From Monocercomonoides exilis PA203 (lineage: Eukaryota > Protista > Preaxostyla), in contig LSRY02000040.1 in NCBI GenBank assembly GCA_001643675.2, positions 682,001 to 746,000 of the forward strand: a DNA stretch of 64,000 nucleotides, written 5' to 3'. The notes beneath the pieces are model-generated. The model was not told where the DNA came from. It made no database searches and saw only the letters and a program-made list of their open reading frames with translations. The position numbers and the translations under genes are program-made. Shown here piece by piece: positions 11 to 21,910 of this stretch. Numbering within the stretch: position 1 is the stretch's first letter; every line of letters starts with the position of its first letter.

Positions 11-322
11 CAGATTATTTCGACCGACTGATCTTCCGACAGACTGATCTTTCGTCCGACTGATCTTTCGACAGATTGATCTCGACAAAGATCTGTCGAT
101 TTCCCATAAAAGAATGATGTTTTGTTTAATAAAGTTTGATGCACCACAAATAAAGTTTTCGTCTATCAGATTATCATTCATTTAAACTGAAAAAATAGAA
201 TATTACTCATTTTTTTGCTAATGTTTTTGTCCAAATAAAAAAGATGAAAATAAACTTATTGTCATTGTCGGTCGACTTGTCGAGGTCTTTGGTGAAAAGT
301 CGGTCTGTCGCAAAGGCCTAAT
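11..322. repeat. 16-bp tandem array with an inverted degenerate arm; probable MITE or transposon-terminus relic, possibly cut by the window edge
   Basis: Units are CGACCGACTGATCTTC (21-36), CGACAGACTGATCTTT (37-52), CGTCCGACTGATCTTT (53-68) and CGACAGATTGATCT (69-82). The reverse complement of 294-310 reads CGACAGACCGACTTTTC. Confidence 0.55.
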
Positions 323-1136
323 CAATATCATGAAGTACTTTTTGTTTATTTATGTCATTTTGATTGATGAACGATTGTTAATTTTTAACGTATTTTTTTC
401 ATTTCATTGATAATTTTTCCATTTCGATTTTGACTCAGATTCGAAAATATTAAATTTTTTTATCTTGAATTCAACTTCAGTTTCTTCCATATTACTAAAA
501 TTAACGTTAAAAGCAATATATATTTATTTAAAAGAAATGAATTTTTTCAAACAGATCAACAAAAAATTTTTAGCATTAAAAAAGATCTCAATGATCATGA
601 AAACTTTTTTATAACGTGGAAATTTGCAGAAATGGTTATGGACCTCATGAAATACTTCGACAACATATAAATATTATCTAGGTGTATAAAAAAAGCATTT
701 CTGCAAATTGCAGATCAATAAAAAAATTGAAAATTGAAATGGGATTTCAATTAAGAAAAATGTTTGAAATTTCGTGTTGATACTTAATTTTCGGAATTTT
801 TCTTAATTTGCCAAAGATTCTATTATACATTTTTGAATATTTCTTTCGCTTTTCTTTGTGGAGATTCTGTGGCTCTTTCTCGACTGAAGTCATAGTTGAA
901 TTTTGTTGTTTCACGTTTCTTATGGAGAGAAGCAAATTATTCTATGTTTGTCCTTCAAGGCATTTTGTTTGTTTATTTATTTTTTAATTTTAATTTTATT
1001 TTCAAGTCTTTTATTTTCTTCTTCTTCTGCCTCATTGAATGTTGGTTTTCCAGCTGCATCTTTCCCGATTTCAAGTGATCAAACCAAGAATCCCTCTTCA
1101 TCATAATTTTCTTCTTCTTCTGTTTCACTGCTGAGC

Positions 1137-3500
1137 ATGCCATCAATTGCATTCGGAAGAGCACTCAAACGAAGCGGAGGGAGAAAAGCGCTTGCTGCCT
1201 TCAAGCGGACAGTTCGTATGAAGACATACACAAACTCAAGAATTGCTCCACCAGAGTTCAAATCAGAAGTGCTAGGGCTGACAAATAAGATGGGAGGAGG
1301 TGGAAGTAACATCAATAATAAAAATAATAATAGCAGTAAGGAGAAGAAGCTATTACGTGTGGTGATGGAACAAGTGCCGCTGGCTATTCTAAGAGGAAGA
1401 CCACCGAAGATGAAGAGGAAGCGAATGATGACTGCAATGAGGTTGAATCAGCAGGGGAAGAAGAGCGAAGGATGAACAAATGCAAATGCGACAGCGCAGA
1501 ATGCGAGGTGTTTGGAGAAAGCTACTGTGGCATTGGAGAGTTAGAGGAAGCTTGGAAACAAAGAGAAAGTGAAAGAAGAGGAGAAAGGAGAAAGGAGAAA
1601 GATAAGGAAAGAATTATTTCTGTGTTTGATGAGTTTCCATCAGTTGAATTGGAGTGTGGCAGGCAAAAAGGTGAAAAGAGGAGAGTGAAAGAGGGTGTTA
1701 AACGGAAGAAAAAGGGAAAGGAAAAGCATTCAGATCAAAGATAAGTCCGATGATGCGTTCATAAGCTGTCCTGAGTGAGCTGCTTTCGAAAAAGTTGGAG
1801 CTGCTTTGTGTGGCAGATGGCAGCATCACATTTGACTCTTCTGAATCTGACACTCGTGAGACAAGTGGAAGAAGCAGAAGTGACATTGAGTGGAATGGCT
1901 ATGACGAGGGAGTGGATGATAAGGAGGAAGAAGAAGAAGAAGAAGACGTGGAGTTAGACAGGATTCTTAGTGCAAAGATATCCATGACAAGCACACGGGC
2001 AAATCGGCAGACACCGAAAAAGATCAGATTTGTTTTTGAATATGGCACCTCTACCACATTCAACTCAGCAAAAATAAGAGAAAACAGCTCAATCGAAGCA
2101 ACATTAATAACAACTGAGATGAAGGACAGGGAGAAAAGAGATTCACTTAAGAAATTGATGAAGAACACACTGAAGCAGATACATGGAAGGATCATTCCAA
2201 CAATCAATCCAACCGATATTAGACTTTATGCAAATCTCGTTCAGGAAGAGGAAAGCAAGGGAAAGAAGCAAAAAAGAAAGTTCTTGCCGAGAGGGAAAGG
2301 GAAGAACATGAACTATTTGATTCGAAATGAAGAGAGGAAAGAGTGAGTGAACGGAGCAGGTACAACAGACACTGAAGAAGCAGAAGAAGACAGTGAAGAT
2401 GATGACAACGACGATAGCGATGATAGTGACGTTAGTGATGATGAAGACAGTTTGTATTTAACACGATCTGCTGACGCATTAAATGCCAATAAAGCAGACA
2501 AGGCAGCGGAAAGAAAAGAAGACTCATACACACTCCATGCCTTGCGCTTCACTCCAAAGCAGCGAAAGACGCTTTCATCTGAATCCAAAAAGAGAAATCA
2601 GAAGAAGTCGCATGTCACTTTCTCACACACCTCAACCATCTCCAGCGGAGAGCTCAGTTCGACCCCTCTGCAGTTTACCTTTCCTTCACCCAAGTCCACA
2701 AGGAAAATGGAGAGAAAGAAGAATACAAGAACACAATTGGCTCAGACGGAGACAGAGAAGCCAGACAGCACCCACCAGAAGACACAGCAACCACAGCTTG
2801 GCGGCTGTTTCTGTGTCACGAAGACATCTTGTCCTGTCTGCCATCAGAGCAGCACTCGGCAGAGAATTGCAGGCACATCTCAGAGCAGCTGCGGAAAACG
2901 GGTTTGCGATAGCTTCTTCTTCTGCAAGTGTGTCTTGTTAGACGGCATGCCAATGCAAATGGAGAAGATAGAGGAGGAGGAGTAGATGACCTTGGGAACA
3001 ATTCTGTGTTTGGGGAGAAAAACAAACAGAAGACAGGGCCGAAGAAGCTGTTTGTGAGGTTGATGAACAGATTGGGCAGGATGAAGGCGCTTCTTTGCTT
3101 CACTCTCTCGGAAAGGCACTCTTCCATCTTTTCAACCAGCTTTGGTCACCTCAGCTTCCAAAGCAAACAACCATTCCTTCTTCGCATGCCGGGACAACAG
3201 GGGGAATATTGGCAAATGATGCGAACTCGTTTCTGAGCCTGTTGTGTGGAACGAGGCTGTTCAGCTTGGGAGGAGAAGATACTGTGAGAGATATGCAACT
3301 GGTGGAGAACATGAGAAAGTAGATGAGTTTGTGGAGAGGAGAAGGAAGGGCAGCTGTGGAAGGAGTGCACGAGGCGAGAGACACAGCTGAGCTGTTCTGC
3401 GAAGAGAGGTGAATCTACAGCAACGAGTTTGAAGTGCATAAAAAGATCAATAGGAAGAATGACGACAATAACTTCTCTTTGGATGCAATGGAAAGAGAGT
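1137..3500 (+). pseudogene. Fragmented gene with acidic tracts and Cys clusters weakly resembling CHY-type zinc fingers
   Basis: Chain of short same-strand ORFs broken by stops and frameshifts. Cys clusters CDSAECEVFGESYCGI (~1490) and CPVCHQ...CGKRVCDSFFFCKCVLLDG (~2830-2945). Confidence 0.35.
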
Positions 3501-4900
3501 TATATGCAATCAATGCGAATATTCTGCTTGACCCACTATTGTTTGCTTCGTCTGTCTTTTTCAAAAACCAACAACTTCTGCTGTCTGCCTCAGAAAATAC
3601 AATTTTAGTTCCTCCTCAAAGAACGGCATATATCCCATCCATCGGAGAAAGTCTACTCGAACTGACAAATCCATCTTTTCAGTTTGCTCTGCTGCGTATT
3701 GAACGGACACAGAAAGAAGAGCAATATTCGACTCTGCCTTCTTCTCTCAAGTTTTCATGGGTGTCTCTTGTCAACATGTTCCCTCTCCCGCTTTTTCATT
3801 TGCTCACTTCAATCGTCCGCACTCTGCCTTCAAAGATTCTTTCAGTATCTTTCACTTCATCTTCCGTGTTCTCCATCCCTTCTTTATTCACATCCTGCGT
3901 CACTTCTTTTTCTATTTCTCAGTCCATGTCATCCTCCATCACAACACCTGCTATCATCTCATTCTCCACTCAGCCCATTAGCCCTTCTGCCGCCTAGTCC
4001 AATCGCCTGCTGCTTTGTCTGCTACCCATGCGCACTGCACTCACTGCTGTTGCAACCGCTGCTCACAGGCTGATGGTGAAGGATGTCTTGTTCCACAAAA
4101 TATCAGCCATATTCGAGATGCACCAAAACCAGAAACATTCTTCTTCTCCTTCGATGTCCATTTCTTCCTTTCTCACTCAGCGGTTAAAGGCCGTTGGTGC
4201 TTCATTCACACAACAAGTCACACCTTCCGCTTTTGCATCTTCTCAGCAAACATCTGAGTCTCAGTCAACTTCATTGGCATCGAATATTGCAACAGATGCA
4301 CTGGACCTGAGTGGATCTTCAAATTCTGCTGCTGATGAAGCTAATACAACTTCTGTTGGCATGCGATAAATGCATCAGGAACAGCAAGTGGATGAGGAGG
4401 AGAACTTCCCTATCAGATAAAGAAAGACTAATTCTCAGCAATTCTTCCACATCAGCTTCAGACAAGCGTCACCTCCTCTCAGTTTCCTCTCTTTTTGCTT
4501 TCGCAATCTCCTTCTCCTTCTCCCTCTTCTCCGTCATTCACATCAATAAATTCTCCATCCTCAGTTTCCCTCCCTTTTCCTTCGACTCATTCTCTTCCAC
4601 TTCAGAGTCGTGAACGGGTATCTTTTTCTTTTTCTTTTCTCCCCCATCTGGAGCAATTCCTGAGAATTCTACGACGCGAAGTCTATTTTTTCAAAATTCT
4701 TTCTTTTTTTCAAAGGATATTCTTTTATCTTCACCTGCAACTGTCCTACTTGCTCTGCTTATCTCACAGCTACAATCTAATTCATAATCTTCTTCTTCTT
4801 CTTCTTCTTCACCTCCTCCTCCTCCTTCTTCTTCAATAACAGAAATTTCACCTTTATCATCATCATCTTCTTCTTCTTCTCCTTTCAATAGAAGGTGATT
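3500..4900 (-). pseudogene. Decayed Glu/Lys-rich coding fragment
   Basis: The minus strand is purine-rich and coding-like but has no long ORF. The plus-strand Ser/Phe-rich ORFs look like antisense shadows. Confidence 0.3.
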
Positions 4901-4902
4901 CA

Positions 4903-7341
4903 ATGAAAGAATTTGGCACAGCCGAAGACTCAGAAGCAGCTCTTCTGCAGCGTCTGGCATTGAACGAACTTGATTCCCGTCTCTCAGACGCAGAGCGAAG
5001 GTGGATTTATCACTCCAACTTATCCTATTCATTTGGGTGTTCTGCACTTCCTATTGTGTCGCCATCTTCTCTTCTCACACCAGGCACGCAAATTCACTCG
5101 TTTCCTGCGCCTTCTGTCTCCTCTCTATTTCCCCCGCCGCCTCCCCCGCGCGTGTGCGAAAGATGACCCTGTCAGAAAGAGAAAGATTAAAACAGTTTGT
5201 GACCCTCCACGTGCGCAACTGCCTCTTCCTCATCTGCACATTCTGTGGGAACAGCAACTGCCACCTCAGCTCTGCTTCCACAGACGTCCTCGCCTCTTTC
5301 TTCAGCGGCGGCGACAGCATCGACGACCCTGACATCACAGGAGCCAAATGGGCAAAAGAATGCCTGCGCATCAGTTCCCCCACTGTCCAGCACGCTGCTT
5401 TGCTCGCCCTCAACCGCCTGGCTGAAACTCACCTGCCATCAAAGTACTTCGACTTGTGGAACCCGATCTTTCCTGAGCTACTGAATGCAGAGCAGATGAA
5501 GAGGTACTGCGAGGTCGACCGCTCCCTCTCCGCCTCGCTTGTCGCGCTGTTTGCATCGTCTGCTGTCAGCTTTGAGCACATTTCAGTTGCAATGCCTCGC
5601 ATGCTCCTTTTATTGGGTATCCCAAACACACCTCTTCAGACAACCGTCCTGCAGATCCTGTTGGAGGCAGCGAAGAGGGGAGAAAGCGAGCGTCTGTCGC
5701 TGGATTCCCTCAGAGCCATCGAGTGGGCGTCTGCAGGGCTGAGATCAGTTCCAGATGAGCTTATCTTTGGCGCCCTGCAGTTCTTTGTGGTGATGCTGGG
5801 CACGATACACAACCGGCCTGACGCTGACAGCGCCATCACTTCTATCACACGAAGGAGGGAATATAATGGAGAGCGGTTTGGCTGCCCCTGCGAAATGCTG
5901 GCAGTGAAGATGTGCTCGTTCACGTTCGAGTCGATGCTGAAGTTGATCAACCCGCTCACGCACACGCCACGCACAGTCTCTTTGGCTGTTGCTTGCATTT
6001 CGGCCTTTGCTGAACTGGGATTTGGAGCAGAAGATGTGATGGAAGACAGGATTGCGCTGCAGCTGTACCAGAAACCGGAGGAAAGGGCGTCGTTTTTCTT
6101 TTCTCTGGCTTCTTCTCCTGGTGGGAGTGGGAGCGGAAGAATAGCATCAGCAGCAAATGCGACGGAGGCAATGTATTCTTCTTCTTCCTCTCCCTTTTAC
6201 TCTCCCTCTTCATATTCCTCTTCCGACCAAAAACTTCACTTCGACTCCGGCACCTGCTTCATCCGCCTTCTCATTTCCCTCTTTTTCACCAAGTTCCCTT
6301 CCCTCACCTCTCTCTCTTCCCTCTCCTCCACCAGCCCCAACGCCTACCTCCGCCTCTACCCAACTCCTCCTCTCGTCTACGCCGCCCGCGCCTTAACCCA
6401 CTTTGCCAAGCAAGACAGACGCATAGCACATTCTTTGTCTTCTATCAGAATCAGTTTCCCCTCCTGGCCTTCCACACATATCTTGCTCTCTTCTGTTGTT
6501 CCGCAGCTGCTGGAGACGATGGAGGGAATTAACTTGGCGAATGTGCTGAGGTTTGTGGCGGTTGTGTGTGAGATTAGCAGGGCTTTTAGAAAGCAGCTGG
6601 TGGAGATGGATATCTTTGGGATCGTGCTGAAGATGACAAGAATGGGAGGGGAGGCGTATGCGAAGAAGAGGAAAGAGGAAGGAGAAGAAGAAGGAAGTAA
6701 CAAAGAAGTGGATGATAATAATAAAGAAGGTGATATAAGAGAAACTTCCATAGATTCAGATAGAAAGCACGTATTCAGCCCAAGTCCGCTATCTCCTTCG
6801 AATTTTGCTCAAAACAATGCAACTTCAGAAAATAATCCCTTCATCGCCCCGATCGCTTCCCCAACCCCTCCAGAACTAATTCCTGCAGACATCAAAAGCA
6901 GCTTAAATAGAAAGCATATAACACCGCTGGATTCAGAAGAAGCTGAAAATGAAGAGAATGAAGAAGATAATGACAACGATAATGATGAAGGAAGTTCAAA
7001 CGAAAGAGAAGAAAGAGACGATATTGAAATTGAAAATGAGGGAGAAAGAGAAAGAAGTTATGAAGAAGAAGAAGTTGAGAATATCAGCAGACAAAGCAGA
7101 AGATGAGAAAGAAGAGAGGAAAGAAGAGCGATCACTGCCGCATCGCGGAATTCTCGTCGGAGTGTGCAGACAGCTAGCCGTTCAGTCGATGCTTTCTCAA
7201 CAGCCTCAGCTGCTGCTGGCACACTCAATGCCTCATTCTCTGCTTCTTCTTCTTCTGCTTCAACTTCATTATCATCATCATCATCTTCCTCTTCCTCTTC
7301 TTCTTCTTCTTCTTCTTCTTCTTCTTCTTCTTCTTCTTCTT

Positions 7342-7372
<31 letters not shown>

Positions 7373-7557
7373 TTCTTCACCTTCTTCTTCTTCCTTTTCT
7401 TCTTCTTCACCTTCTTCTTCACCTTCTTCTTCTTCTCCTCCTTCTTTCTCCTTCTTGGATATTTCTTTTTCTACGCTTCTTCTTCTTCTTCTTCTTCTTC
7501 TTATCGTATTTCTTCATTTTTTGCATCTTCATAATGGATAACAGCAGAAATTAAAAA
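4903..7557 (+). CDS. Hypothetical alpha-helical (ARM/HEAT-like) protein with an acidic/Ser-rich tail; possibly frameshifted near 7100
   Basis: The ORF 5001-7106 (ATG at 5163) has amphipathic helical segments such as VQHAALLALNRLAE and LQTTVLQILLEAAK. A poly-Ser frame continues at 7164-7541. The 5' structure is uncertain. Confidence 0.45.
7245..7500. repeat. (TCT)n trinucleotide tract
   Basis: Directly visible run of TCT/TCA/TCC triplets. Confidence 0.9.
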
Positions 7558-7559
7558 GA

Positions 7560-9520
7560 ATGGAATTTATGAAGAAATCAACTTCTTTGAAAAAAATGAA
7601 AAGAAGATGATAAGTGAATAAAGAGAATGAAGATAAAGAGAAGAAGAATTTGATTTGTCAATAAATGATGATTGGAAATTTGAAAGAAAAAAATGAAGAT
7701 ATTGATAAATGTTAAAGTTAAAAAGAAATGGAGAGAAGTTTGAAGAGAAGACGTCGACGAACAGTAACAGTACGCGACAATGAAGCAAGAAGAGTTCGTT
7801 GAATGTCAGAACCATTCCGTCCGTTTCTTCTTTTTCATTTGCTCTTTGGAGCATTGCAACAATCATCATGGAAGGGAATTGATAGGCGAAGCAGAGGAAA
7901 GAATATCCACCGTTTCGTTTTTATGTGAGTAAATGAAAGAGCATTCAGGAGCCTTTCCAGGGTTAGGCAATGAGGAGTACACAAAAGTTAGAGCAGTTGC
8001 TGTTGTGAAAGGTGGAGGGGTAATTCAGGATGGAGAGGCTGTCGTTGGAGAGTTGAAAGTGGCCTTCGAGCATGCTTCGACAGAGCTGGCCGAGAAAAAT
8101 GATAGTAAAGATAAAGCGCATCATGATGAAGGAGATTTCTGACATTTTTATTCCAGAAAGATAAAGAAAAACTATGCTTTTGCTAACAATGGCGAGGACT
8201 GTTATAAAAAGATGTTCAAAGATGCTTATTGATTCATCGTCAAGCATAAGCAAAGTTGAAGCAACTTTGAGAACTGAGAGGTTGATGTGGAAAAGATTAA
8301 GGGAGTAAGCAGTGAGAGTACAAGAAGCATAAGGAAAGAGGCGAAAGTGATGAACAGGTGCGTTGGAGAGGTGAGTGGTGTTTTTGCAGGCACAAAGCAG
8401 CTTAGAGTTGAAGCAGACACGTTGGTTGGAAGGAGAAAAAAGGGATAATTCGAAGGAACAATTGAAGCAGAGGTGGCTTAAAGGATGATGCAGCCATTGA
8501 GAAACACAACGGAAGCCAACTGATGGTGTTCAAATGAACAAGATCAAGACTTCTGGAGATAAACCAGAATCGGATTATGGAAAGAGAGATATGGGCTTCG
8601 AAAGAGAAGGAGGAGATCCAGAAGATATTGACGAGTGTTATCGATTCAGAGGATTAATGGGCAAGCGAATGATCTGGTGGCTTTATCGACGAATATCTGT
8701 TGGGCGCAGTAGAAGAAGAAGAGGATGAGATCGTGACCGGCATAGAAGTTGAGGCCGGGACGGGAGGAGTTGATGTCGCAAAAGGAGGCTTCTGTGACGA
8801 GAGAGAGTTGGAAAAAGTGAAGGAAAAAGAGGAACTCGTTGTTTGGGCTTGGATGCTGCAGCACTGGAGAAAGATGCACTTGCCAGCAAAGGCGTTATTC
8901 AAGGATTAGCGGAGAGCGAGGATGGAAACGGGGTTGGCAGATGCGACAGCTTTGTGGGAGCAGTCGAGAAAGAGGCAGTCGCTGTTTGTTGAGCAAGTGA
9001 TGATGCACTGGATGAGGATGCAAATCAATGCGAGCAACTTGTGAACACTCACGCCTAGGCAGCACAGTCTTCTGCACATCTCCTCTCCGCTTTCCCGCTA
9101 GAACTGTCCCGTTGCATGACAGCACGATGTTGGTGATGTTGGCAAAGTCCAAAGCGAAGACTTTTCTGATGTCTGTGGCCGCCAACCTCGAGACAGTCTT
9201 TCCGGCCAGTGTGGGTGGGCTGACAACATCGAGGGCAGCGACAGTGATCAAAGAAAACGAGACTGAGAGGGATTTGAGTTCAGAGGAAGTGGATGCAGAA
9301 ACTGACACAATATACATGAAAAGGAGAGGGCGCAGTTGTTATAAGACACACGCACTTCAGCAGCTTCCACAGTTGCATATGAAAAAGGTGTTTGTGGAGT
9401 CTGCATATAAAAAGAGCAGCCTGCAAAAGCCGAGCAACTGAGGAGGTAGTATCAGGATGAAGGATGAAAGACGAGGAAGATGATGAAGGATTGAGAAAGG
9501 GGAAAAAGAAAATGTTCAAG
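7560..9520 (-). pseudogene. Decayed multi-pass membrane protein gene fragment
   Basis: Successive short minus-strand ORFs with hydrophobic segments (IFEHLFITVLAIVSKSIVFLYLSG; FIMMRFIFTIIFLG), interrupted by stops and frameshifts. Confidence 0.4.
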
Positions 9521-10199
9521 TGAAGATTTTCGTTCTGTGGAAGATTAAAAAGTGTCTGAATGAGAAATTCTTAAATATCATATTGTTTCTTTTGTAATTT
9601 TTTTCAATAGCTTAGATCAATTAATTGAAATAACTAATTTAAAGAATTATTAATTTAAATACAATTATTAACAATGAACAATTGTTTATTCGACAAATAT
9701 TATGTGCTTCCATCATATTTTTCTATATGTGTTAATGAAAATTATTCGTTTTCTATAAATAGATGAATTGTGAATAGATTTTTTTCATTTGAATAGATTC
9801 AACTTATTTGAATGAACTGGGTTTTTCTTAAATGAAGTCATGTTATTTTCAATGGTTGAAGTGACACTTGAATAAAGTGCGATACACTTAAATAAAGTTT
9901 TTGTGAAAAAGTAGTGAACACTTATTATAATATTTTCACGTTTTATCTTTCACTTTATCAACAAAAAAAATGAAAAATTCAAAAAATCTGAGATTTTTCT
10001 GTATTCTTAATCAATATTTGATATATGTTTAAAGAAGATTTTATTTGACAAAAAGAGAGAGAAATGAATGCAAATATCATTTTGTTATCGTTATTCAATT
10101 CCATTCCAACTTTTAACTTTTTTTGATCACTGTATAATTAAATATAAAAAACAAAATTTTGTTTTTATTGAAGTTCGTGGAGTGATCTGCATCCAACAA

Positions 10200-13100
10200 A
10201 GCATATAATTTCGAAGCTCTCAGTCACGTCGACAGGTTGAAGCTGCTTTCATCTTTGCAACTTTCTTCGTTGACTGAATAGATTACACATTCATTTATCG
10301 GCTTTTTTTCACAAAGCCTCTCAATATTCCGCTTTTCTTCATTCTTCTCCGCTTTCTTCCATTGATAGTCTGGCGATTTCTCTCTTGTCAACTTTCATAT
10401 GCCTTAGTTTCCTTCTTTATTGCATCATCAACTATCTGTCTCGAATCTTACGCTTCATTCGAAACATTCTTCCAACGAGCAATAAACATTATCAATCCAA
10501 TCAAATGGATCTTAAGAATTATCGATGTCATAACAGTTGCAATCGGTGGTCGAGACAGTTATCTTTCTCTTCTTCCTTCAGTAATTCTTTCATCGTTTTA
10601 AATTAAACTTCGCTGTTGTTCTTCAAAAGAAATTGTACTGTAGATGCACTGGATTCGAGCATTTTAACATGATGCTTGTGGCCAATTCTGTGGTGTCAGG
10701 CACTGAAGTTACAATTGAGGCTGAGATGACAACATGGATTACAGTTTCATTTTCATTAAGTTCTACTTGCAACGGATATTTCTGAGTTTGTGAAGGGATT
10801 CATTGACAAAATCAATCTGGAGGAGCTAGTGCCAGGGAATGAACGAAGAGCCAATGAGATCCAGGGAAAAGACATTGCCTTCTTAACAAGATATCACTGA
10901 ATTTAGCTGCGGAATAAAGAACGGGATGCTCTTTCCGAAGCCATTTTTTCCAATGTTCTCAACTGGAAGAAATTCACGTCGAGATGTTCGGAAGAAAGCC
11001 ATCACCGACTTTCATGCAATGAATATTCAAAAGGACATGATCAGAGCAGGCGATGTAGTTCCTTATGGATGAATAGCCTACTGCATTTGGGCTGTTGCTA
11101 GAAAACAGCACAAACTGAATTTGTATGTTTCCTCCAGAGATCGACAGCCTTCACTTGGATGAATTGGAGATTGTGGTGTCTGATATTCTTCCTGAGCAAT
11201 CCTGAAGATCAACCATTAATCCACTCCACTGGCACAGCTCTTCTGATCGATCATCGCTCGCTCTCAACTCTGGTGCGCTTGTTGCTCCATCAAATGAATA
11301 TGAAGATAAGTTTACATCCGTCAAATCTTCCAACGCTTCAATGCTCCCTTTTTCAGATGTGGAAACACACTTTTTGTTCGAGTAGTTTTCCAATTCCAGC
11401 AAAAAAGATGAAGATGAAACAGCCAAGCAGCACGGGCCAAGCGAATCTCGGGTTATGTTTTGAAATGATGACTGCTTCAAATGGAATGCCGAAGCATTTG
11501 ATGCAACGCTCCCTGCACATCCTTCTCCAAGAATTGTGTTTGAAATAGCCAAGAAATTCATCTGAATATCTGAATCTTGGCATTCTATAGAAAGCAAAGA
11601 ACCAGACAGCACAGATATGGCATCGAATTCCGAATGATAGTATTGGACGTTTGAATGGCCTCCTGAACCGTCTGAGGAAAGCACAATCAAGCTTGCTTTG
11701 CTCTCTGCATTTCTGATTTGAACCTTCTGCAGCTGAGAGTCTTTGCAATTGTAAAGGATAAGGGTGGATTGTTCAAGTGTGCAACTGGAAATTAGCACTT
11801 GCTGCGTTGAAATGTTTACCAGATTGCGGAAGTCCAACAACACAACAGAATTCGCATCAGAATATTCAAGTTCATATATGAGCAATATTGTCCGCCTCTT
11901 GCTCCCACGCACGAAGAACTGAGATGAATACAAGTAAAAGTGCACCCGTTTGTTGATAGTCTTCCATTCTCGTGGAGAATGATGGAGCAATTCAATTTGT
12001 GTTCGGTGTTTCCACTCCAATCTTTTTGAGCAAATATTGTGTCTGCAATCAACAAGTTGCCATCAGTCAGTGATTACAAACTTGAATGAGAAGAAGAAAA
12101 AGCGCTTCCAAACAAAAACGTGAGAAATTCCATTTTCACTCTCAGCAAGCACGAAACGAGACTGCTCCTCTTGTTTCCAATGCTGATGTTCAGCAGAATA
12201 ATCCCTCTTACGCCTTCCACATCCAGCGACTTGATCCAAACATCTCAAGCGCTTGCTTCCCCTGACACCACAGCGCTTTTGCCGATCAGCAAATTGCTGT
12301 AAACAAAAAGAATGATGTGGGGCAGAGCAACATTCAAGGAAATGCAAGGTTGACTTATTCCACCACACTGGCGTGAATCGGAGGAGTTGTCGGATGAAGA
12401 AGATGCAAATATAGTCTCGCTCCGATACACAACAACAAGTAGCAGCAGATCTTGTTCATCAGCATAGTCTTGTGCGGTGCATTCCCACATAGCAAACTCC
12501 CGAACAAACGGTGCTCTGAAATCGAGCTGGAACGGTTTGTTGCCAATTTGAATTTTTTCATTCGCTCATTTTTCATATAAGTCTCTTCCAACAAATGCTT
12601 TGTTCTCCATGAATGCGATGTTTTTAAACAGGAAAGGAAGCAGGCCATCTCTTGTGATCAAAGAACAATCCAGGAATGTAACGCCTCCTCTTCCAGTTGC
12701 AGAGCAGAAACATCCAGAGATAGCTGAAAAACTGCACTCAAAAAAACCTCCTTCGCTTAGACTCATAATCATTCCTCCACCGCTTTCACTTTGACTGCTT
12801 CCACAGTTCTTCATCGATGTGTTTTGCACAGACACGCTACAAGGCTCGCTACCAATGCAGCTGATAAGGAAGATTCAGATGACGGACTTTGGAGAAGCGA
12901 AAAAAGCGCGTAACATTTCAACTGAACTATTTCACTGTTAACTTCAATTAATCCTATCAACTCGCCTCTCCACACAACCTGTGAAAACATGACAACAATT
13001 CTTCTGATCATCAACTCCATATTGTTCATGGAAACATTTGTCAAATCAATGCTGCTCTCATGTGATGCAGTTCGAACGTGGCCTCAACATTCGATGGATT

Positions 13101-13262
13101 GAAACTGTTAGAATAACATTTCGCATATTTTAAACAGGAAACCTCTAACGCAAAATGGAATGTCACTGGAGAAGCGCAGATAAATAGCAAGAGAAAAGCG
13201 GCTGAACTCTGTTCATTATTCAATAAAATAATGATGACAAATAAGTTTGTTTTTGAATCCAT
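10200..13262 (-). pseudogene. Pseudogene of an expanded Ser/Cys-rich repeat (beta-helix-like) type-I surface-protein family
   Basis: Fragmented ORFs with a hydrophobic N-terminus, motifs DLLLLVVVYRSETIFASS..DSRQCGGISQPCISL and ESGGGMIMSL..GRGGVTFLDC, and a hydrophobic segment near 10480-10550. Many stops and frameshifts. Confidence 0.7.
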
Positions 13263-13744
13263 TTTTTTAGAAAAATCGATCACAATTATTTGTTAATGAT
13301 TATTTCCGGTCTTTAAATGCTATTGAGCAGATCTAAGTGTAAATACCAGTTGTTTGCATATATATTGATGCAATCCAACACATAATTCAGCATTATTTTA
13401 ATTATCTTTATTTGCTCAATAGAAAAAATACATATTTCTTGAAATAAAATACGAAATTCTTCTTTCATCAATTTTTAAAAATGTTAAAACGTGTGAATAA
13501 CATAGTTTGAAGGTCCAACAATCAAAGGATGCAATATTGATGCGTTTTGAATCGTTTATTGGGGCAAAAGAATTTAATCAGTTTTATTAACTTTTTGATC
13601 CTTTTGATCTTTGAAAGATTTTGACGAAAACAACAAAAATCATTCGCAAAACAACATCATTATGAAACAAATAATATATGTATGTTTTTGCAATCAATTT
13701 TATATACATAAAAAATACTTGTTTTTTATCAAAATTTTCGTAAC

Positions 13745-13862
13745 TCAAATAAACTCAGTCTATCTTAAATGAACTCGGTTCATTCAAATGAACCCGATCT
13801 ATTTGAATAAACATGAGTTCATTTGAATAAACCTAGTTTATTTGAATCAAAAAAATCTATTC
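13745..13862. repeat. Tandem array of about six 19-20 bp quasi-palindromic units
   Basis: Units include TTAAATGAACTCGGTTCAT, TCAAATGAACCCGATCTAT, TTGAATAAACATGAGTTCAT and TTGAATAAACCTAGTTTAT. Confidence 0.8.
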
Positions 13863-14254
13863 AAAATTCATCTAATGTTTCAAGATCTTCAAAGTCAATT
13901 TATAAATTACTTTGCATTAACATCATAAAACTAGTTTTTTAAATAAAAAATTGATTGATTTCATATTGTTATTATTGTTTTCACGTTAAAAATACCAGTG
14001 AACATTTGTATCGTTCTGTTTATTGAATTATCGATATTTTCTATTAATTTTTTATGTTTTCTTCAAATTTTGTAATAAAAACAATGAAAATCAAATTAAA
14101 ATCAACAAATTAATAATTATAATAATATATTAATGCATATTTTCGCAAATTTTTTTCTGAAATATTTTCTTATAAACCAAACCCTTAATAAAATAATTTT
14201 TTGATCAAACTTCGTAATTTTTTATGATATCAAAAAAAAATCACCCATATATCC

Positions 14255-15570
14255 ATATCTTTCACATCACTCATCTGATGAAACACTCCACTTGAAAGAT
14301 TCGTATTTGATAGATTCTCAATAAATCTTGCCAGAATTCACTTGGCATCTTTCTCAATAAGGTGTCTGTTTCATCTATTCTTTCTCTATCCAAAAATTAC
14401 TTTAATTTTTACAGCGCTATCCACGTATCCCTTTCGTTCTTTTGATTAGTCAATATTGCTACTGATATATCCTTCACTCCAACGTCTTCTCCCCATGTTT
14501 GAAAGAGGACACTTTTTGGATATTATCCTCTCCAGTCTATCACTTATGACTTTTAATGGGCGTAACTTCTAGTCATTATTTCTCATCTCCTTAAAGGTCA
14601 ATCCGATGTTTCTCAATAACGGACTAGCACTATTTCGTCTTCTTGCATATCTCTCTCTCTCTCTTCCTTCTCAGAGAGGACTGTTTTTAAGTACTTCCAA
14701 AGGGCACACGCACAATCAGGTCTAAAATTGTATCAAGTCTTCTCGGTGCGATTGTTTGAAATATCTTTGCGACCTTTTCCCACTCTCGGTGCATAGTCCG
14801 GTTTTTTCAAAGTCAAACTGAGTATGTCTAGCAGCATTTCAGCTGAGATATGTGGAGTCTTCTTCTTATTTCATCAATCCACAATATGCGACTTCTTTCT
14901 GTATCCGCATCTCGCGGTCTTCCGCGGTCTCATGCTCTATCTTCTCCTCGCGATTCTTCGCAGATTACACATCTTCAGTCTTCTCGAAAAGTTTCGCGGT
15001 ATCAATATCTGCACGTTTCTCTCGAGCATGCACTTTTTCTTATCGTTCGATCGATTTGCATTTTCTCTCAATTTCTTTCACTATTCTTATCTCACAGCAA
15101 ACTTTGCTCTCTCTTCATATTAACTCTTAGGATCTTCAGTGGTTTGTTACTCCACAATAATCTCGCGACAATTCACGGCTCTCTTATATCTCTCAGTCCC
15201 GTTTTATTTAGCTGTTTCATTTTTGTTATTATGACTCAAAAAATGAATCATATCATTTCCAATTATAAATTAATGATATTTCACTTTTTCAGTTTTGATA
15301 TTGTGTCTTTATGCAGCTTGTCTATATTTCCTTTGTTAAAGCCTATCGATTTACTGAGCTTTCAATATCCATAATAATCTCGCTGCAAAGTACGGTTCTC
15401 TGCTCTATCTCCTCTCATGGTCTCGGCATTGAACGCGGTTTCTCTCTTTCATCTCTTGGTCTGGTGGCAAAGCGCGGTTTCATTTTCTCTCTCTATTCTC
15501 ATGATCTCAAAACTTAACGTTGTTTTGTTCTTTGTTACAATCTCTTGAATATGCGCAGCTTCATTTAAAT
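14255..15570 (-). other. Old, highly decayed coding-like relic (left part)
   Basis: No real ORF. Rich in TCTCGC/CGCG motifs, and shares ATCTCGCTGCAA and CAAAGCGCGG with 20590-21910. Confidence 0.35.
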
Positions 15571-16099
15571 TATATATATATGGGTATTTTTTTATGAAAA
15601 GTCACCACAGATCAGAAATCTGACCCATGGATGTTAATTATAAAGCACTCCGTTTCCATTATACTAATGAAATTTTGCAACTTTCACAATAATGTTTGTT
15701 GGAACAATTCAAACCTCAAAACAAGAAAAAGTATTCAGAAACAAAATATTATATATCCAACAATTTGATCAAAAACAAAAATTTCTGTTTTTGAATATGA
15801 AAAGGTTTTATTTGATTGGACTAATTTGCAATTGTTAACTAATGAAATGTTCATGGTTTGTTTAGATTCTTTTTCATGAAAAATTTGAGATTCGTTGATT
15901 AATCACATTCTTATTTGAATTTAATTTTTCATTGCACAGAATGTGCCTGGAATTTTAATAATTGCATTAATTACCCCCACAAGTTTGATAAAGATGTGAA
16001 ACATACATATCAAAAGGTTTGCATTCAGCTTTTATATGAATGTTATATTTCATAATTGATAAAAAATTTTTTATTTTTCAAGCTAGACAAACTCGCAGC

Positions 16100-17290
16100 A
16101 TATAACAGAGAGCCTTAAGTGAAAGAGATAGCAATGCAGGGCTGCACTTCAGACTCATTTGTGGGAAAAGAAGATCTGTTATTTAAGGTTATGAAATACC
16201 TGAGCGAGACGATATTTGTATCTTCTGTTGTAAAAAAACCACGAAGATAGCAAGCAACGTGGAGAGTTCAGCATGCCTTGCGTATAATTGAATGTTGGAG
16301 TGAATCACATTATTCCGTCACATTATTCTCAGCTGTTAATATCAGAGCAAACAGTCATCAATGGAGAATGTTGTATTCGGGATGTGAGCATTCACTCACT
16401 TGAATCTCAGTCATCTGCTTTGGTGCATCTGAACTCAACAATAACCAACGATGGCAGTATTATCACAACGTCTGGGAAGGTTCATATTGAGGGAGTTTGA
16501 TTCAACTTTGATCAATCATTTTCGAATTCAGGCAGCTCTATTATCCATGAGGCAAGTGGCCAGCTTTCTCTTTTATTTGTTGACTTCTCTTCTGTTGGAG
16601 GATTAAATATCGATCAGCCTGTTGTTGTTCTCAACTCGACCTTGCTGAGCATTGCAAAAGGTATTCTGCATGTTGACAACTGCTCAGTGTCGATCCTTTC
16701 GTTCAAGAAGCCTTCATTTCTGTTAAATGGAGTTGAGATAAATATTACAAATATGAAGCTGGAACAGATTGAATCAACAAGAAATGTTGTTGAGATTGGA
16801 AATTGTGGAAGTATTGTGCTGAATGGAATTGATGCAGATGGAGTGAAGTTGTCTGAAGGTTGCATCATTTCGATTGGCAGTTCATCTTTAGGAACAATTT
16901 CTGTTGGAAGCTCATCATTCGACAACTGCTCAAGGAATTCTGAAGAAGCTTCTTCATTTTGTGTCTCCTCCTTCTTCAACGCCTTCTTCACCTTCTTATT
17001 TATTATTATTTACGCAGAAATAAGCAAAAAGAAGACAAAACATTCTCAATATTGACTATATATTTGTTTCTATCAAAAAATTCTTTGAAAAAATGAATGT
17101 CAAAAGAAACAAGTGATGGAAGGAGAATGAGGTTAATAGATGAAACAAAATTATATTTTGAAGAAAAATTGAGAAAATAAAAATCGATAAGTGAAAAACA
17201 GAAGAGAAAGAGGAGAAAGAGGAGTTGGAGGAAGAATAAGAATAAGGAGAAGAATAACACGATAAGAAGGATGTCAATTCCAATGAAGAA
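16100..17290 (+). pseudogene. Internally deleted fragment of the same repeat surface-protein family as 10200-13262
   Basis: LNVGVNHIIPSHYSQLLISEQTVINGEC parallels LNVALPHIILFVYSNLLIGKSAVVSGEA. It then jumps to a hydrophobic segment and charged tail, with stops. Confidence 0.65.
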
Positions 17291-17299
17291 CATGGCAAG

Positions 17300-19800
17300 G
17301 CCTCGCTATTTACTCCCTCCGCTATTCCACCGTCTTTGGAAACTGCGCCAATCACTTTCCATTATACAAAGGAAGATCAAAGCAGATCGCTTTTTTTTGA
17401 ATCGTTCCTCCACAGCTTCAGCCGCACCATCTGGAACGACGCCTTCAGCCATTCTTTCTTCTCCGCCACCGACTGTATAATCTCCACTGGTAGCTTCAGC
17501 CCAATTCATTCCCCCGCCACCTTCGATTCTGTATAAAGCTCCAGCTTTAAGTTGTTCAGCGCATCTCTGTCTTTTCAATCGCATTATTCAAAGACTGCTG
17601 ATGAGTATTTCGCAGATCAGCTTCATCACAAACATCCAAAAGCTGTTCTGCTCGGAAGTTGTTCAGTACAAACGATGGAAACACAGATATTTCGGTAAAT
17701 CTCATTTCCGACTTTATTCCCTCAAACAACGAAAAAACACTTTCATCTTTTTTCTGATCCAACTTCAAACTCCGTCAAGATGTAATGAAAACTGCATTTC
17801 ACCTCCTATTTCCTCCTTTCGCACAAATTCACCAAATAGCCACATCCCTGCAAAGACCTTCCGGAATAGCTCTTCTTCAAACATCCTCGTCAACCTCACC
17901 ACCTCGTTGTTCTTCTGCTCCGTGTGCTTCTCCCCCAGCCACATACACAAAAAGCTTCGAAAATCCAGCCTTGGAACCTTCACTTCTCCCGCACAAAACT
18001 CCCCATTCAAAGCTTTGATGCAATATTGTCTCCGCATCACCCCCGGATCATCAACAGCATCAACACAAGCAATGGCTGCAGCTCTGTCTTCAGCCGCATC
18101 AGCGACCGCTCCATCGGCACAGACGACCACCGCATGGGTGGCATCCGAAGCACATGCGCCGTTTCGTACGCAACCTACCACTGCATCTCAGACACTGCGC
18201 TCATCAACCGCTCCATCGCTGTCGACCCCGCCAGAAAAGGTCCCTCTTCAACCACTATCTCTTCTGCTCCTCCTTCCCTTCACCTGCCCAACCAGCCGCT
18301 CCACATTCTCTTCATACGGAGCCTTCATTTTCTTCTGCTCCTACTTCTTTTGCGCAAGCGCAGTCTGCTGCTTCTCAATCACCTCCTTGAACAGCGCCTT
18401 CTGCTCGCGTATCATCTTCTCATGCGCTTTCGACTGCTCCATCAGCATCTTCGTTTCCTTCTCCATCTAGTTTCTCTTCTGCCACACATTTGCACACCCC
18501 ACTTCTCCATACTGAAACTCTCTCCTCCACAGCTATTTGCTTCACCCACAACACTCACCCCGCCCCCCACTTTCACAACAACCCCCTTCCCGCTCGTGTC
18601 TGGCCCAAGCATAGAAATGCCACCATTGGTTATGCTTAAGATAAACTACTCCTGGCACTTTTCACACAGCTCCGAAGGAAGAATCATCGAAATCAAAGAT
18701 GGAACCACTCCACCTCCCGCAGTCGACAACGAAGAAGGCGTGACAAGCTGCACCCTTGCCCCTTCTCCTGACCCTGACCCTGCTCCCTCGCTGTCTACAC
18801 TCACCAACTCATCCTGATATCTTCAGAGCTTCTTCTCCTCAATCTCCACATCAATCAGTTCCACCTTCTCCTTCACCATTTCCAACTATTCCTGAGTCAC
18901 TTTCACCTTCTCATTGAACTTTTCGTTCAGCCCCAAAAACTTCCTCTGATTCATTCTGACGATCTTGTCCTTCTCCTGCTGCATCTCTGCAAAGTCCACT
19001 CACTTAATTTGAAATCTGCTCATCATACTGGTTCTTATGCAAGTTCATGTTAAACTCCGAATGCCTTTTCTCCACCTCATACTTTCCCTCTTTCTTCCTC
19101 TATTTCTTTGCTCCTCCAATACAACCAGTGCAATCGCTGCTTGCGAAAGGATCACATCCTCCATTCTCCGCCCCGCAGCATCCAACACCTTTTCCATAAT
19201 CTCTTCCTTTCTTCGCGCACTGTGGGCACGCGTTATATCGCTTCCTTACCCAGCTTCACCACCACACGCCTCCACTGCGGCAATCGCCATTTTTGCAGCG
19301 ACGGGTCAAACAGATCGTTGATCGACGAGAAAGCATTCACATCCGCATCCGAAAAGATCTGTTTGCTCCCCAACTTTGTGCACACCGCGTTGCGAACGAT
19401 GGAAGCGGAGCCACCGGTGGAACCGAAAGCATCTTCGAAAGCGCCACATCGTATGCACATACGACACCCCCATTCAGCACCTCAAGTCACGCTGCGATAT
19501 ATCCCCTCAGCATCTGCTGTTCTTTTAGAAAGCTTCTAGTGATTTGCATAAACTTCAGCTGCATCTCGATGTAGTCCATCGCTGCTCCAGGCGCTTATGA
19601 CGCTTCGACTGTCAAGGCATCTGAAAGGTCAATCGATTGCGTAGATGAAGATGATGACTGCTCATCCCTTCCGCCTTCTTCTCTTCTCTTTTGCGTTTCA
19701 CAAACAGCGATGAAGCAGACAAAGAAGACAAAAGCGCTAAGTGAAGAGAAGAACTGCTACGCAGCTCTGGTCATAAGATTCTTTCCATGCAAGCCTTAAA
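17300..19800 (-). pseudogene. Decayed gene fragment with weak resemblance to the myotubularin C-terminal region
   Basis: Broken minus-strand ORFs. The segments TRMFEEELFRKVFAGMWLFGEF and MQFSLHLDGV loosely recall myotubularin motifs. The family call is tentative. Confidence 0.35.
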
Positions 19801-20589
19801 GTCTACCAGCAGACTTACCGATCGCACAAATATTTCATCTTCATACAAAAAGAAAGGTTGATCATACCGTTAAGCTCACATTTTTAACTCGAAAAGAAAA
19901 GAAAGAGCAGAGTCTATTCGAGCAAGTTAAGGAGAAAAAATGAAAAGGATCATTAAAAGATATATAGCAGCAAAAGAGACTTGGAACGCGATTTATTATT
20001 TGAATCAGAAAAAAGAAACAAGTGTTTTTATTTTGTTTTTAGCATGAGAACGCTTCCAATGAAAAGTTTCTATTGAATATCACTTTTTACAAAAATATCT
20101 GTTATTATTCGATAAGAACAACCATTTTTTTAAAAAAAATACACACTCTTTATGATTTATTAAAAGCAAACTATTAAAAAATGAAAATTATCAAAAAAAT
20201 TACAAAGATATTGAACATTTTATCTATTCGATTTTCTATTAATGAATGTGTTAAAAAAAGAAGTACCCTCGCGAATAATCAAAATGAATATTCAAACGGA
20301 TGAAATGAAAACAAAGAAAACAATAAATTATCACAGTCTTACTCATGCAATAAGAAAAACAGGATTATCCTTCACAAATATGATTAAACAGAGAAAGTTT
20401 TATTTAAAAACCGTCTAAGTGAAATGTGATATTTGTTATTAACTGCTTAAAAAACAAATGTTAAACAATATGTTCTATATTATGGTAACGGAAAGATCAA
20501 CATTTCTGATCACTAGTGATCAAATTTTCAGATCAATTAATATTTTGTGACTTTTCAAAAAAAAATACCCATATATATATATATATATT

Positions 20590-21910
20590 GTGACAAAATT
20601 CTCCTTCTATATATATCTCGCTGCAATATATGAATCGATTCTCACTAATGTCCCTGCGATATATATATGAATATGTTTTGTTGCTGCATTTATCAATTTC
20701 TCGCGAAGCTGCGCATCTTATTCCCTAATAAAGTTCTATTTTTTCAAGTTGATTTTCTTCTAATCCCAATCTCGCTGCAATGCTTATCTATTCTATCTTT
20801 AAGACGAATTATAATCTTGCTGCAAATCTCAGCTCTCTCTTCTCTCTCTATATCGCGTCAAAGCGCGGCTTGCTTTATATTCTGTGTTATAATCTTGCAA
20901 TAGAATTAAAATATATATAAATGAATATATTTATGATTATCTCGTATTATCAAAATTTTGTATTTATGCCATTATTTTTTGGAAAGTCACAGCTTCATAA
21001 TAAGTAATAATCATTTTATAGTAATTATATTCTTCCTCAATAATAATCTCGAAGCGATGTGTGCATTTATCCTCCTTATTTCTATCAATATCAAGCGATT
21101 TATTATTATTATTTTTTTAAATTTAACTGCATCTCGCGATTCTTCGCTGCTCTTGTTCCTAATAAATTCTGTCAATATTCAGTAGATTCAATGCGATATT
21201 ATTTCTCGCTTCTATGCTCGGATCATTTTTTCAAACTCACACAATTTTTCGTCAAATTTTGTTTTAATTTGTCTCTCACTCCAATGTGCTGCTCTTCATC
21301 CTTTGTTCGGTGTATATATGTTATATGATTTTGTAATTTCATTCTCTGAAGAAATCTCTTGAGAATGCATGTCTTCATTTCAATTAATTGTATCTTTATT
21401 TAAAGGGGATTCTTTCTCTATTATCATCTCTCTTCAATTAGTGGATATATTTTCCAAAATTTTTAAGATATCAAGCGAATTTTAAATTTATCTGTATCTC
21501 GCAATTGCATGCTTCTCTTTTCCTTATAAATAAACAAGATATAATGTAGTTTTATTTTTTTTTAAAGTCTGAAAAAATATCATATCTTCATTTTGTTTAA
21601 ATATCTCACGATTTCTCGTGATTTCAGTTTCTGAAATTGTCTTTTGGCACAACGCCTCACTAATTCAAATAATTATCTCACTCTGTTTTGCAGCTTCTGT
21701 TATTGATATTATCTCTTCAAAATGCGCGGCTCTCTTTTCGATTCTATCATCTGTGTACTATCTTCTATTCCGGATGATGTCTAACATGCTCAGATCCTGA
21801 AAATTCTTCAATAATAATTTTCACTCTTTCCAGTTTCAAAAATAGATCTTATTCTTTTCCATCGCCTTCTCTGTGTTTTATAATAACAGGTTGTTGCTTC
21901 ATTTTCATTG
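20590..21910 (-). other. Old, highly decayed coding-like relic (right part) with internal duplications
   Basis: One minus-strand frame reads as Glu/Ile/Lys-rich protein with frequent stops. Motif composition matches 14255-15570. Confidence 0.35.

Follow-up and report, generated by a model that had tools for sequence, protein, structure and literature searches.

What kind of DNA occupies about 5 kb between two (TA)n tracts in the oxymonad Monocercomonoides exilis PA203, and where the decayed genes inside it came from, are the questions raised by this locus. The window analysed here is the whole stretch of 64,000 nucleotides from contig LSRY02000040.1 (positions 682,001 to 746,000), and the element under study is its segment 15582-20570, which measures 4,989 bp between 24-bp inverted termini. 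A first-pass annotation had proposed a gene-capturing, Pack-type transposon with Mutator-like affinity. Our analysis, for which the M. exilis genome (82.3 Mb, 101 contigs) was searched, indicates with high confidence that the segment is a non-autonomous, decayed member of the Sola2 superfamily of DNA transposons. The Sola superfamily was reportedly defined by Bao et al. in 2009.

The two termini follow the pattern GGGTATTTTTTT[A/T]TGAAAAGTCAC and are identical at 23 of 24 positions. The left terminus (15582-15605, plus strand) reads GGGTATTTTTTTATGAAAAGTCAC, and its inverted match is located at 20547-20570 on the minus strand. No third site was found within the 64-kb window with the degenerate pattern at up to 3 mismatches, and 0.00 terminus matches are expected from shuffled sequence as a control. 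Both termini adjoin (TA)n, as had been described. The G+C content is 44-55% in the central interior (about 17200-19800) and 23-40% in the rest of the element, while the DNA around it has mostly 18-35%. No long open frame is present within the 4,989 bp, and tblastn of the 887-aa transposase of the family, introduced below, gave no match in the whole window. The segment was correctly called free of a transposase and, with no transposase gene of its own, this copy is not autonomous.

A genome-wide search with the 24-bp terminus returned 74 matches at no more than 2 mismatches (35 forward and 39 reverse), against 0 for a reversed control. The first-pass annotation would have been abandoned had the motif occurred as unpaired, randomly oriented short repeats; about 24 inverted pairs were found, spanning 0.24 to 14.9 kb, of which 17 were examined base by base and about 7 more were read off coordinates. 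They fall into size classes of 240 bp (two miniature elements), 4.9-5.8, 6.5-7.6, 8.45-8.7, 11.8 and 14.7-14.9 kb. Identical 4-bp flanks are present in 13 of the 17 inspected pairs (ATAT in ten, AAAT in two and ATGT in one); the identity stops at 4 bp and the fifth base never matches. The terminus family thus duplicates 4-bp targets with a strong preference for ATAT, which explains the (TA)n location of the window copy and of the C45 copy L027.

Within the longest of these pairs a transposase gene was found. An intact frame of 593-887 aa lies about 1 kb from one end in the copies C6:848801-863457, C32:33760-48693 and C12:1183627-1195398, and is also intact in the copy inside C23:750985-776249; in the C17 copy the gene is broken. 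It is present in none of the 5-8.7-kb family copies, nor in the window. As to the question whether any pair encloses a DDE (aspartate-aspartate-glutamate) transposase, a transposase does lie between the termini of the 11.8-14.9-kb copies, but the enzyme appears to be of the DDD (three-aspartate), Sola2 type. Intact transposase ORFs are located at C6:849832, C32:45726 and C12:1192508.

In an exhaustive search of a library of 1.84 billion proteins, 654 homologs of this transposase were identified. M. exilis MONOS_18616, a Blattamonas protein and all other public homologs are annotated as hypothetical, and one public relative contains a UCH (deubiquitinase) domain. A word-index protein search found two metagenomic relatives of the 593-aa open reading frame (ORF) and no relative when the core region of the 887-aa ORF was used. 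No match was obtained in a PDB sequence search, Pfam scans covering 20 ORFs of the window and of related copies were without significant result, and the similarity of the transposase core to DUF7869 (E = 0.003) stayed under threshold.

In an alignment of 38 relatives, D112, K114, D196, H200, F201, H233-G234-K235, D239 and F242 are invariant, and a TDxCxxC...H motif upstream is nearly so. The spacing from D196 to D239 is 43 residues, and a zinc finger or long insertion is absent between them. The AlphaFold model built on this 38-sequence alignment (predicted local distance difference test, pLDDT, 88.6) has a beta1-3/alpha/beta4/alpha/beta5/alpha topology in RNase H-like order, with one aspartate each on strand 1, behind strand 4 and where the helix following strand 5 begins. 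Its best PDB matches by Foldseek are the IS21 IstA transposase, retroviral integrases and RNase HI. As modelled, the protein would carry a DDD set on an RNase H-like fold, as a Sola2 transposase should.

A direct match decided the assignment to Sola2. The comparison was made by eye with published protein sequences and by BLASTP via the database protein P0086, which is PPL_04538 of Heterostelium album (Polysphondylium pallidum PN500) and contains the published Sola2_PPa-1 strings. The 887-aa ORF (L048:2424-5084, minus strand) matched P0086 at 30% identity over 234 residues (E = 2e-26); the aligned part reaches from TDxCxxC to HGKSxxD and spans the catalytic core. With phmmer the library-wide value was 1.8e-18. 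The supplementary Sola2_DFa-2 and Sola2_PPa-1 proteins contain the same set of motifs as the M. exilis ORF, and the order agrees. The family thus combines the features by which Sola2 is recognised, namely a homologous transposase, a 4-bp AT-rich duplication and terminal inverted repeats. Zator / ISAzo13, a hint from the protein atlas, was dropped after the direct Sola2 match.

The Sola2-like transposase superfamily of this genome comprises at least 403-435 candidate loci. Dozens of them have intact frames of about 1,000-1,400 aa with 33-42% identity to the enzyme of the window family (examples from the superfamily are G000:C11:1559483, C59:404756, C41:687625 and C43:149644).

The window segment is an insertion into an older dispersed repeat. 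Its flanks, 14700-15570 and 20590-21460, belong to one repeat (here repeat F) with at least 119 candidate loci, and at least ten further copies in the genome have them separated by just 15-27 bp (two on C69, and others on C41, C29, C21, C35, C7, C59, C25, C34 and C26). Examples of such empty-site paralogs are C69:536797-537926, C29:289225-290351 and C34:275415-276579. These empty sites were judged from match coordinates, and one copy, L010 on C17, was aligned as sequence: it runs continuously over the window junction, where it has just a short AT-rich stretch instead of (TA)n and the element. The prediction that removal of the segment would rejoin two relics of like composition holds, and the absence of any empty-site copy, which had been named as fatal to an insertion, is contradicted by these copies. 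L010 (G000:C17:66976-70087) itself contains a related element with the terminus GGCTAAATTTTTTTGAAAAGTGAC, which begins at about L010:1490 next to ATAT. It sits 85 bp downstream of the insertion position of the window and is an independent insertion; the matching right flank across it is located about 9.7 kb away. The 36-bp unit of repeat F builds long tandem arrays at some loci, e.g. G000:C36:629137-629732.

The features of the element and its flanks are as follows.

14700-15570, no strand: left half of the interrupted repeat F (46 matches, 68-84% identity).
15571-15581, no strand: left (TA)n; 15578-15581, ATAT, is the presumed target-site duplication, as suggested by the family.
15582-15605, plus strand: left 24-bp terminal inverted repeat.
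15606-16070, plus strand: left subterminal non-coding region, the "L-type" end, common to the 5.8-8.7-kb members and to sister-family termini.
16071-16851, plus strand: gene A fragment (tblastn, 56-70% identity; beta-helix fold model).
17089-17648, minus strand: gene B remnant, 3' part (63-82% amino acid identity to L038:6583-7179).
17749-18216, minus strand: gene B remnant, upstream part (35% identity to L038:5928-6488).
18217-20254, no strand: rest of the interior, without an intact frame, its left part having 44-55% G+C; other family members match it in the same order.
20255-20546, minus strand: right subterminal region, the "R-type" end, found in essentially all family members.
20547-20570, minus strand: right 24-bp terminal inverted repeat.
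20571-20588, no strand: right (TA)n, which opens with ATAT as the presumed target-site duplication.
20590-21460, no strand: right half of repeat F, with the 36-bp minisatellite motif.

The interior holds the remains of two convergent genes which meet around 17056-17300, in agreement with the earlier description of two decayed genes joined tail-to-tail near 17290. By tblastn, gene A aligns with residues 1 to ~260 of a 323-aa frame, which the C20 copy has preserved intact; the window version has a frame break at 16229/16237, and an open frame extends to 17055. The gene A query has at least 2,261 candidate genomic loci. More than 100 of them, judged from coordinates, are uninterrupted frames of about 2,500-2,600 aa, some up to 3,100 aa, and the match is always N-terminal; the versions borne by elements end after 320-390 codons. 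The window fragment corresponds to the first ~260-300 codons, or about 12%, of the ~2,600-aa paralogs. In an Atlas model the fragment folds into a right-handed parallel beta-helix (template modelling score, TM, 0.63-0.71 to Beta_helix and DUF1565 clusters). Gene A thus truly represents the 5' part of a gene from a giant, surface-protein-like family, loci of which include G000:C52:270313-271218, C9:209070-209957 and C21:944654-945562.

For gene B, the 3' part consists of three tblastn pieces in different frames with one in-frame stop, and the upstream part contains 7 in-frame stops. About 150 relatives were found, mostly decayed; most of the best-matching ones, and many others too, are located inside family members. 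The longest open frame among them, of 1,391 aa, is located at C41:10141, and Pfam gave no match for gene B. Of the intact parent genes sought for both pieces, candidates for gene A exist in large number, and gene B has only these mostly decayed relatives.

A second, degenerate paralog of the gene A N-terminal domain (40% identity) is present elsewhere in the window at 11939-12532 on the minus strand. It lies within a region, 9760-13874, that is bounded by imperfect 74-nt inverted arms (9760-9833 and 13801-13874). At 14235-14250 the window also reads CAAAAAAAAATCACCC followed by ATAT, which resembles a solitary right terminus from a related family (for comparison, see the C14 miniature element described below); only these 16 bp resemble the right end of the family, and a partner was looked for and none was found.

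The window copy can be explained from its relatives. Positions 191-4989 of the element map in order, with gaps, onto 6476-14657 of the 14.7-kb C6 copy, and this transposase-bearing copy covers 64% of the window copy. What the window copy lacks is the left ~6.3 kb of the C6 copy, with the transposase and, on the other strand, a large beta-helix gene. The 8.45-kb copy L021 is covered to 98% by the C6 copy and is accordingly a simple derivative; compared with this L021 type, the window copy has further internal deletions. Its left ~190 bp, the L-type end, are common to the 5.8-8.7-kb members and are about 80% identical to termini found near transposases which are themselves only ~58% identical to that of the window family. 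The window subfamily is therefore probably a recombinant of two related Sola2 families. Most similar to the window copy is a partial copy, truncated on the right, at a distance of 71 kb on the same contig; its identity of about 90% indicates that the insertion is old.

Another arrangement is seen in L031 (G000:C6:1418445-1426053) and similar 7.2-7.6-kb copies on C18, C30, C35, C14 and C21. These have a ~98-bp R-type end on both sides and carry the gene B region twice, inverted, as if made of two right arms.

Were the two gene pieces captured by this element, as the first-pass annotation held? Part of this claim stands, as gene A does derive from a cellular multigene family. The capture cannot be credited to the window copy, however: 17 other terminus-bounded members, whose interiors are 65-80% identical to it and whose termini reach 93%, jointly cover 100% of it, so that it has no private cargo. 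Among the alternatives to the Sola2 reading given above, the one that survives best is a Pack-type capture within Sola2, in which this lineage took up both gene pieces from host genes after the loss of its transposase. It would fit the restriction of gene A to the first part of much longer paralogs, and quite different mosaic interiors do occur in the family, at C6:153540, C15:355106 and C69:1609312. Nevertheless, genes A and B are present in the same order in the transposase-bearing 14.7-kb copies and in the 8.45-kb copies, which makes their acquisition older than both the transposase loss and the window copy, and nothing in the latter is unique. This alternative is therefore improbable. Since the transposase-bearing copies also hold gene A, we infer for the time and manner of acquisition that the fragment was taken up once, by an ancestor of the family.

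The mosaic interiors keep a weaker, family-level version of the capture idea alive, and they answer positively whether other terminus pairs carry different cargo. The 4.9-kb members L028 (G000:C6:153540-158461) and L045 (C15:355106-360041) are 97% identical to each other, and a third such member (C69:1609312-1614403) is 73-82% identical. All three share with the autonomous copy only the termini and ~180 bp. Their interior combines a ~700-bp piece, which elsewhere lies consistently ~2.6 kb upstream of ~2,600-aa genes, with a second piece, found elsewhere ~7 kb upstream of another type of Sola2 transposase. The terminus family thus does shuffle foreign DNA, as Sola2 does in dictyostelids. That oxymonad Sola2 elements are habitual gene-fragment shufflers, a Sola2 counterpart of Pack-MULEs (Pack-type Mutator-like elements), is a tentative idea which we regard as rather unlikely. 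As a separate observation, the constant 2.6-kb spacing suggests that the giant genes belong to a larger repeated unit.

The original proposal of a Pack-MULE-like element, i.e. a non-autonomous Mutator element carrying fragments of two host genes, drew on features which are real: short termini beginning with GGG, no transposase, gene fragments within, a TA-rich target and, as shown here, a gene A which is truly a fragment of a large cellular gene family. Mutator elements, however, make target-site duplications of 8-11 bp and not of 4 bp, the transposase of the autonomous relatives is of the Sola2 DDD type and not MURA-like, and no MULE or Transposase_mut Pfam domain was detected in any tested ORF of the family. 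The 4-bp duplications and the Sola2-type partner transposase refute the assignment to the Mutator superfamily, and a Pack-MULE is very improbable here. An element of Kolobok or piggyBac type is just as improbable. It would share the 4-bp duplication, and for Kolobok the 5'-GG...CC-3' termini fit the RR...YY rule (PMC9587614), but the duplications are ATAT, AAAT and ATGT and never TTAA (0 of the 17 inspected pairs), the 43 residues between the second and third acidic residues leave out the zinc finger or long insertion by which Kolobok is defined (PMC9587614), and the transposase aligns directly to Sola2. A non-mobile origin, by local rearrangement or segmental duplication with chance inverted ends, could appeal to the 90% identical partial copy on the same contig but is practically excluded by the termini paired on many contigs, by the paralogs with empty sites and by the occurrence on different contigs of two 4.9-kb members with 97% identity.

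Several points weigh against the assignment to Sola2 or qualify it. The target-site duplication of the window copy is uninformative and cannot be proved, because (TA)n is present on both sides, and 4 of the 17 pairs have no matching 4-bp flanks. The 11.8-kb, transposase-bearing copy on C12 (L040+L050, G000:C12:1183627-1195398) and the C14 miniature element are flanked by inverted complements instead; in the former the outer 12 bp are exact inverted complements without a direct 4-bp duplication, which may point to insertion into a palindrome or to a longer terminus. The third catalytic residue is taken to be D239, and not E231, from conservation; Sola2_DFa-2 has Q at the E231 position and keeps D239, which fits the DDD description of Sola. 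Finally, beyond the 24-bp terminus, the ~190 bp of the L-type end are absent from the transposase-bearing copies, and the true mobilising partner of the window copy is uncertain. Concerning the miniature elements, both (L043, G000:C7:673273-673512; L044, C14:1274317-1274556) measure 240 bp and have the related termini GGGTAATTC... and GGGTGATTT...; the inverted complements of L044 likewise comprise the 12 bp beyond its termini.

With the segment read as a Sola2 element, the following mechanism can be proposed. A DDD transposase with an RNase H-like fold, encoded by the 11.8-14.9-kb relatives with the same 24-bp termini, would recognise these termini, cut the element out and paste it into a 4-bp AT-rich target, usually ATAT, which would then be duplicated; with targeting of this kind, (TA)n tracts would be natural landing sites. 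Judging from the sequences, the window copy may have been mobilised in trans by this predicted enzyme. It entered a TA-rich spot of the older dispersed repeat and decayed later. Its interior corresponds to the right-hand ~8-kb module of the family, shortened by internal deletions and fused to a left end of ~190 bp that is of another type; this module carries the 5' fragment of the giant beta-helix surface-protein-like family and gene B, now a pseudogene. The core of the first description, a non-autonomous DNA transposon with terminal inverted repeats at a TA-rich site, is supported by the genome-wide pairing of the termini and the missing transposase, and its Mutator-like affinity had to be given up.

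About 35% of the M. exilis assembly has been reported as "unclassified repeats" (PMC8767320). A part of these can now be named as a very large Sola2-like superfamily, whose transposase loci number at least 400 and in many cases have intact frames of ~1,000 aa, and for one Sola2 family the termini, target site, autonomous forms and deletion derivatives are defined. The giant beta-helix family, with ~7.8 kb per locus, could make up a large share of the same unclassified fraction. For the window, the analysis chiefly corrects the earlier reading: the element exists but is old, dead and quite ordinary as such elements go, and should be masked as a non-autonomous DNA/Sola2 copy and not annotated as two pseudogenes. 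If the shuffling proposed above is true, such elements could spread promoters or N-terminal exons of the giant beta-helix family and help to diversify, even amplify, it; Sola2 members carrying pieces of these genes may merit separate attention. According to the first-pass annotation, such elements are not known to have been described in oxymonads. The literature search indeed found no paper linking Sola elements with Monocercomonoides, but the element belongs to a known superfamily, and the missing link is an annotation gap, not a sign of a new kind of element.

Compared with known systems, the window copy resembles plant Pack-MULEs in being a terminus-bounded, non-autonomous element with a cellular gene fragment, that of gene A. 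It differs from them in superfamily, transposase and duplication length, and the fragment is inherited family-wide, in autonomous copies too, and was not captured per element. Like internal-deletion derivatives of the Ds/Ac type, it keeps both termini and most of the right-hand module; unlike them, it has a left ~190 bp that differs from the transposase-bearing copies, which makes it a recombinant of two end types and not a simple deletion. The dictyostelid Sola2 elements have 12-22-bp termini, an 888-aa transposase and 4-bp AT-rich target duplications (AWWT; ATAT, AAAT, ATTT), and occur as 10-15-kb elements with passenger genes, as chimeric relatives and as transposase-deleted derivatives (Bao & Jurka 2013, PMC3627910). 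The M. exilis family differs from them in its unrelated terminal sequences, its oxymonad host, its passengers (a beta-helix gene, a beta-helix gene fragment and gene B, in place of Fanzor1) and the very large size of the superfamily in its genome, with at least 400 transposase-like loci. With Sola2 DFa-1/2/3 of Dictyostelium fasciculatum and PPa-1/4/5 of Polysphondylium pallidum it has in common a DDD transposase of ~890 aa, homologous to theirs, in which TDxCxxC, a helix with a conserved H, a DFKEN-like motif, WxDxxxHF and HGKSxxD follow one another in the same order. Also common to them are short termini of 12-24 bp, AT-rich target duplications of 4 bp (AWWT; ATAT, AAAT) and the same range of forms, from 10-15-kb autonomous copies with passengers to chimeric relatives and transposase-deleted derivatives.

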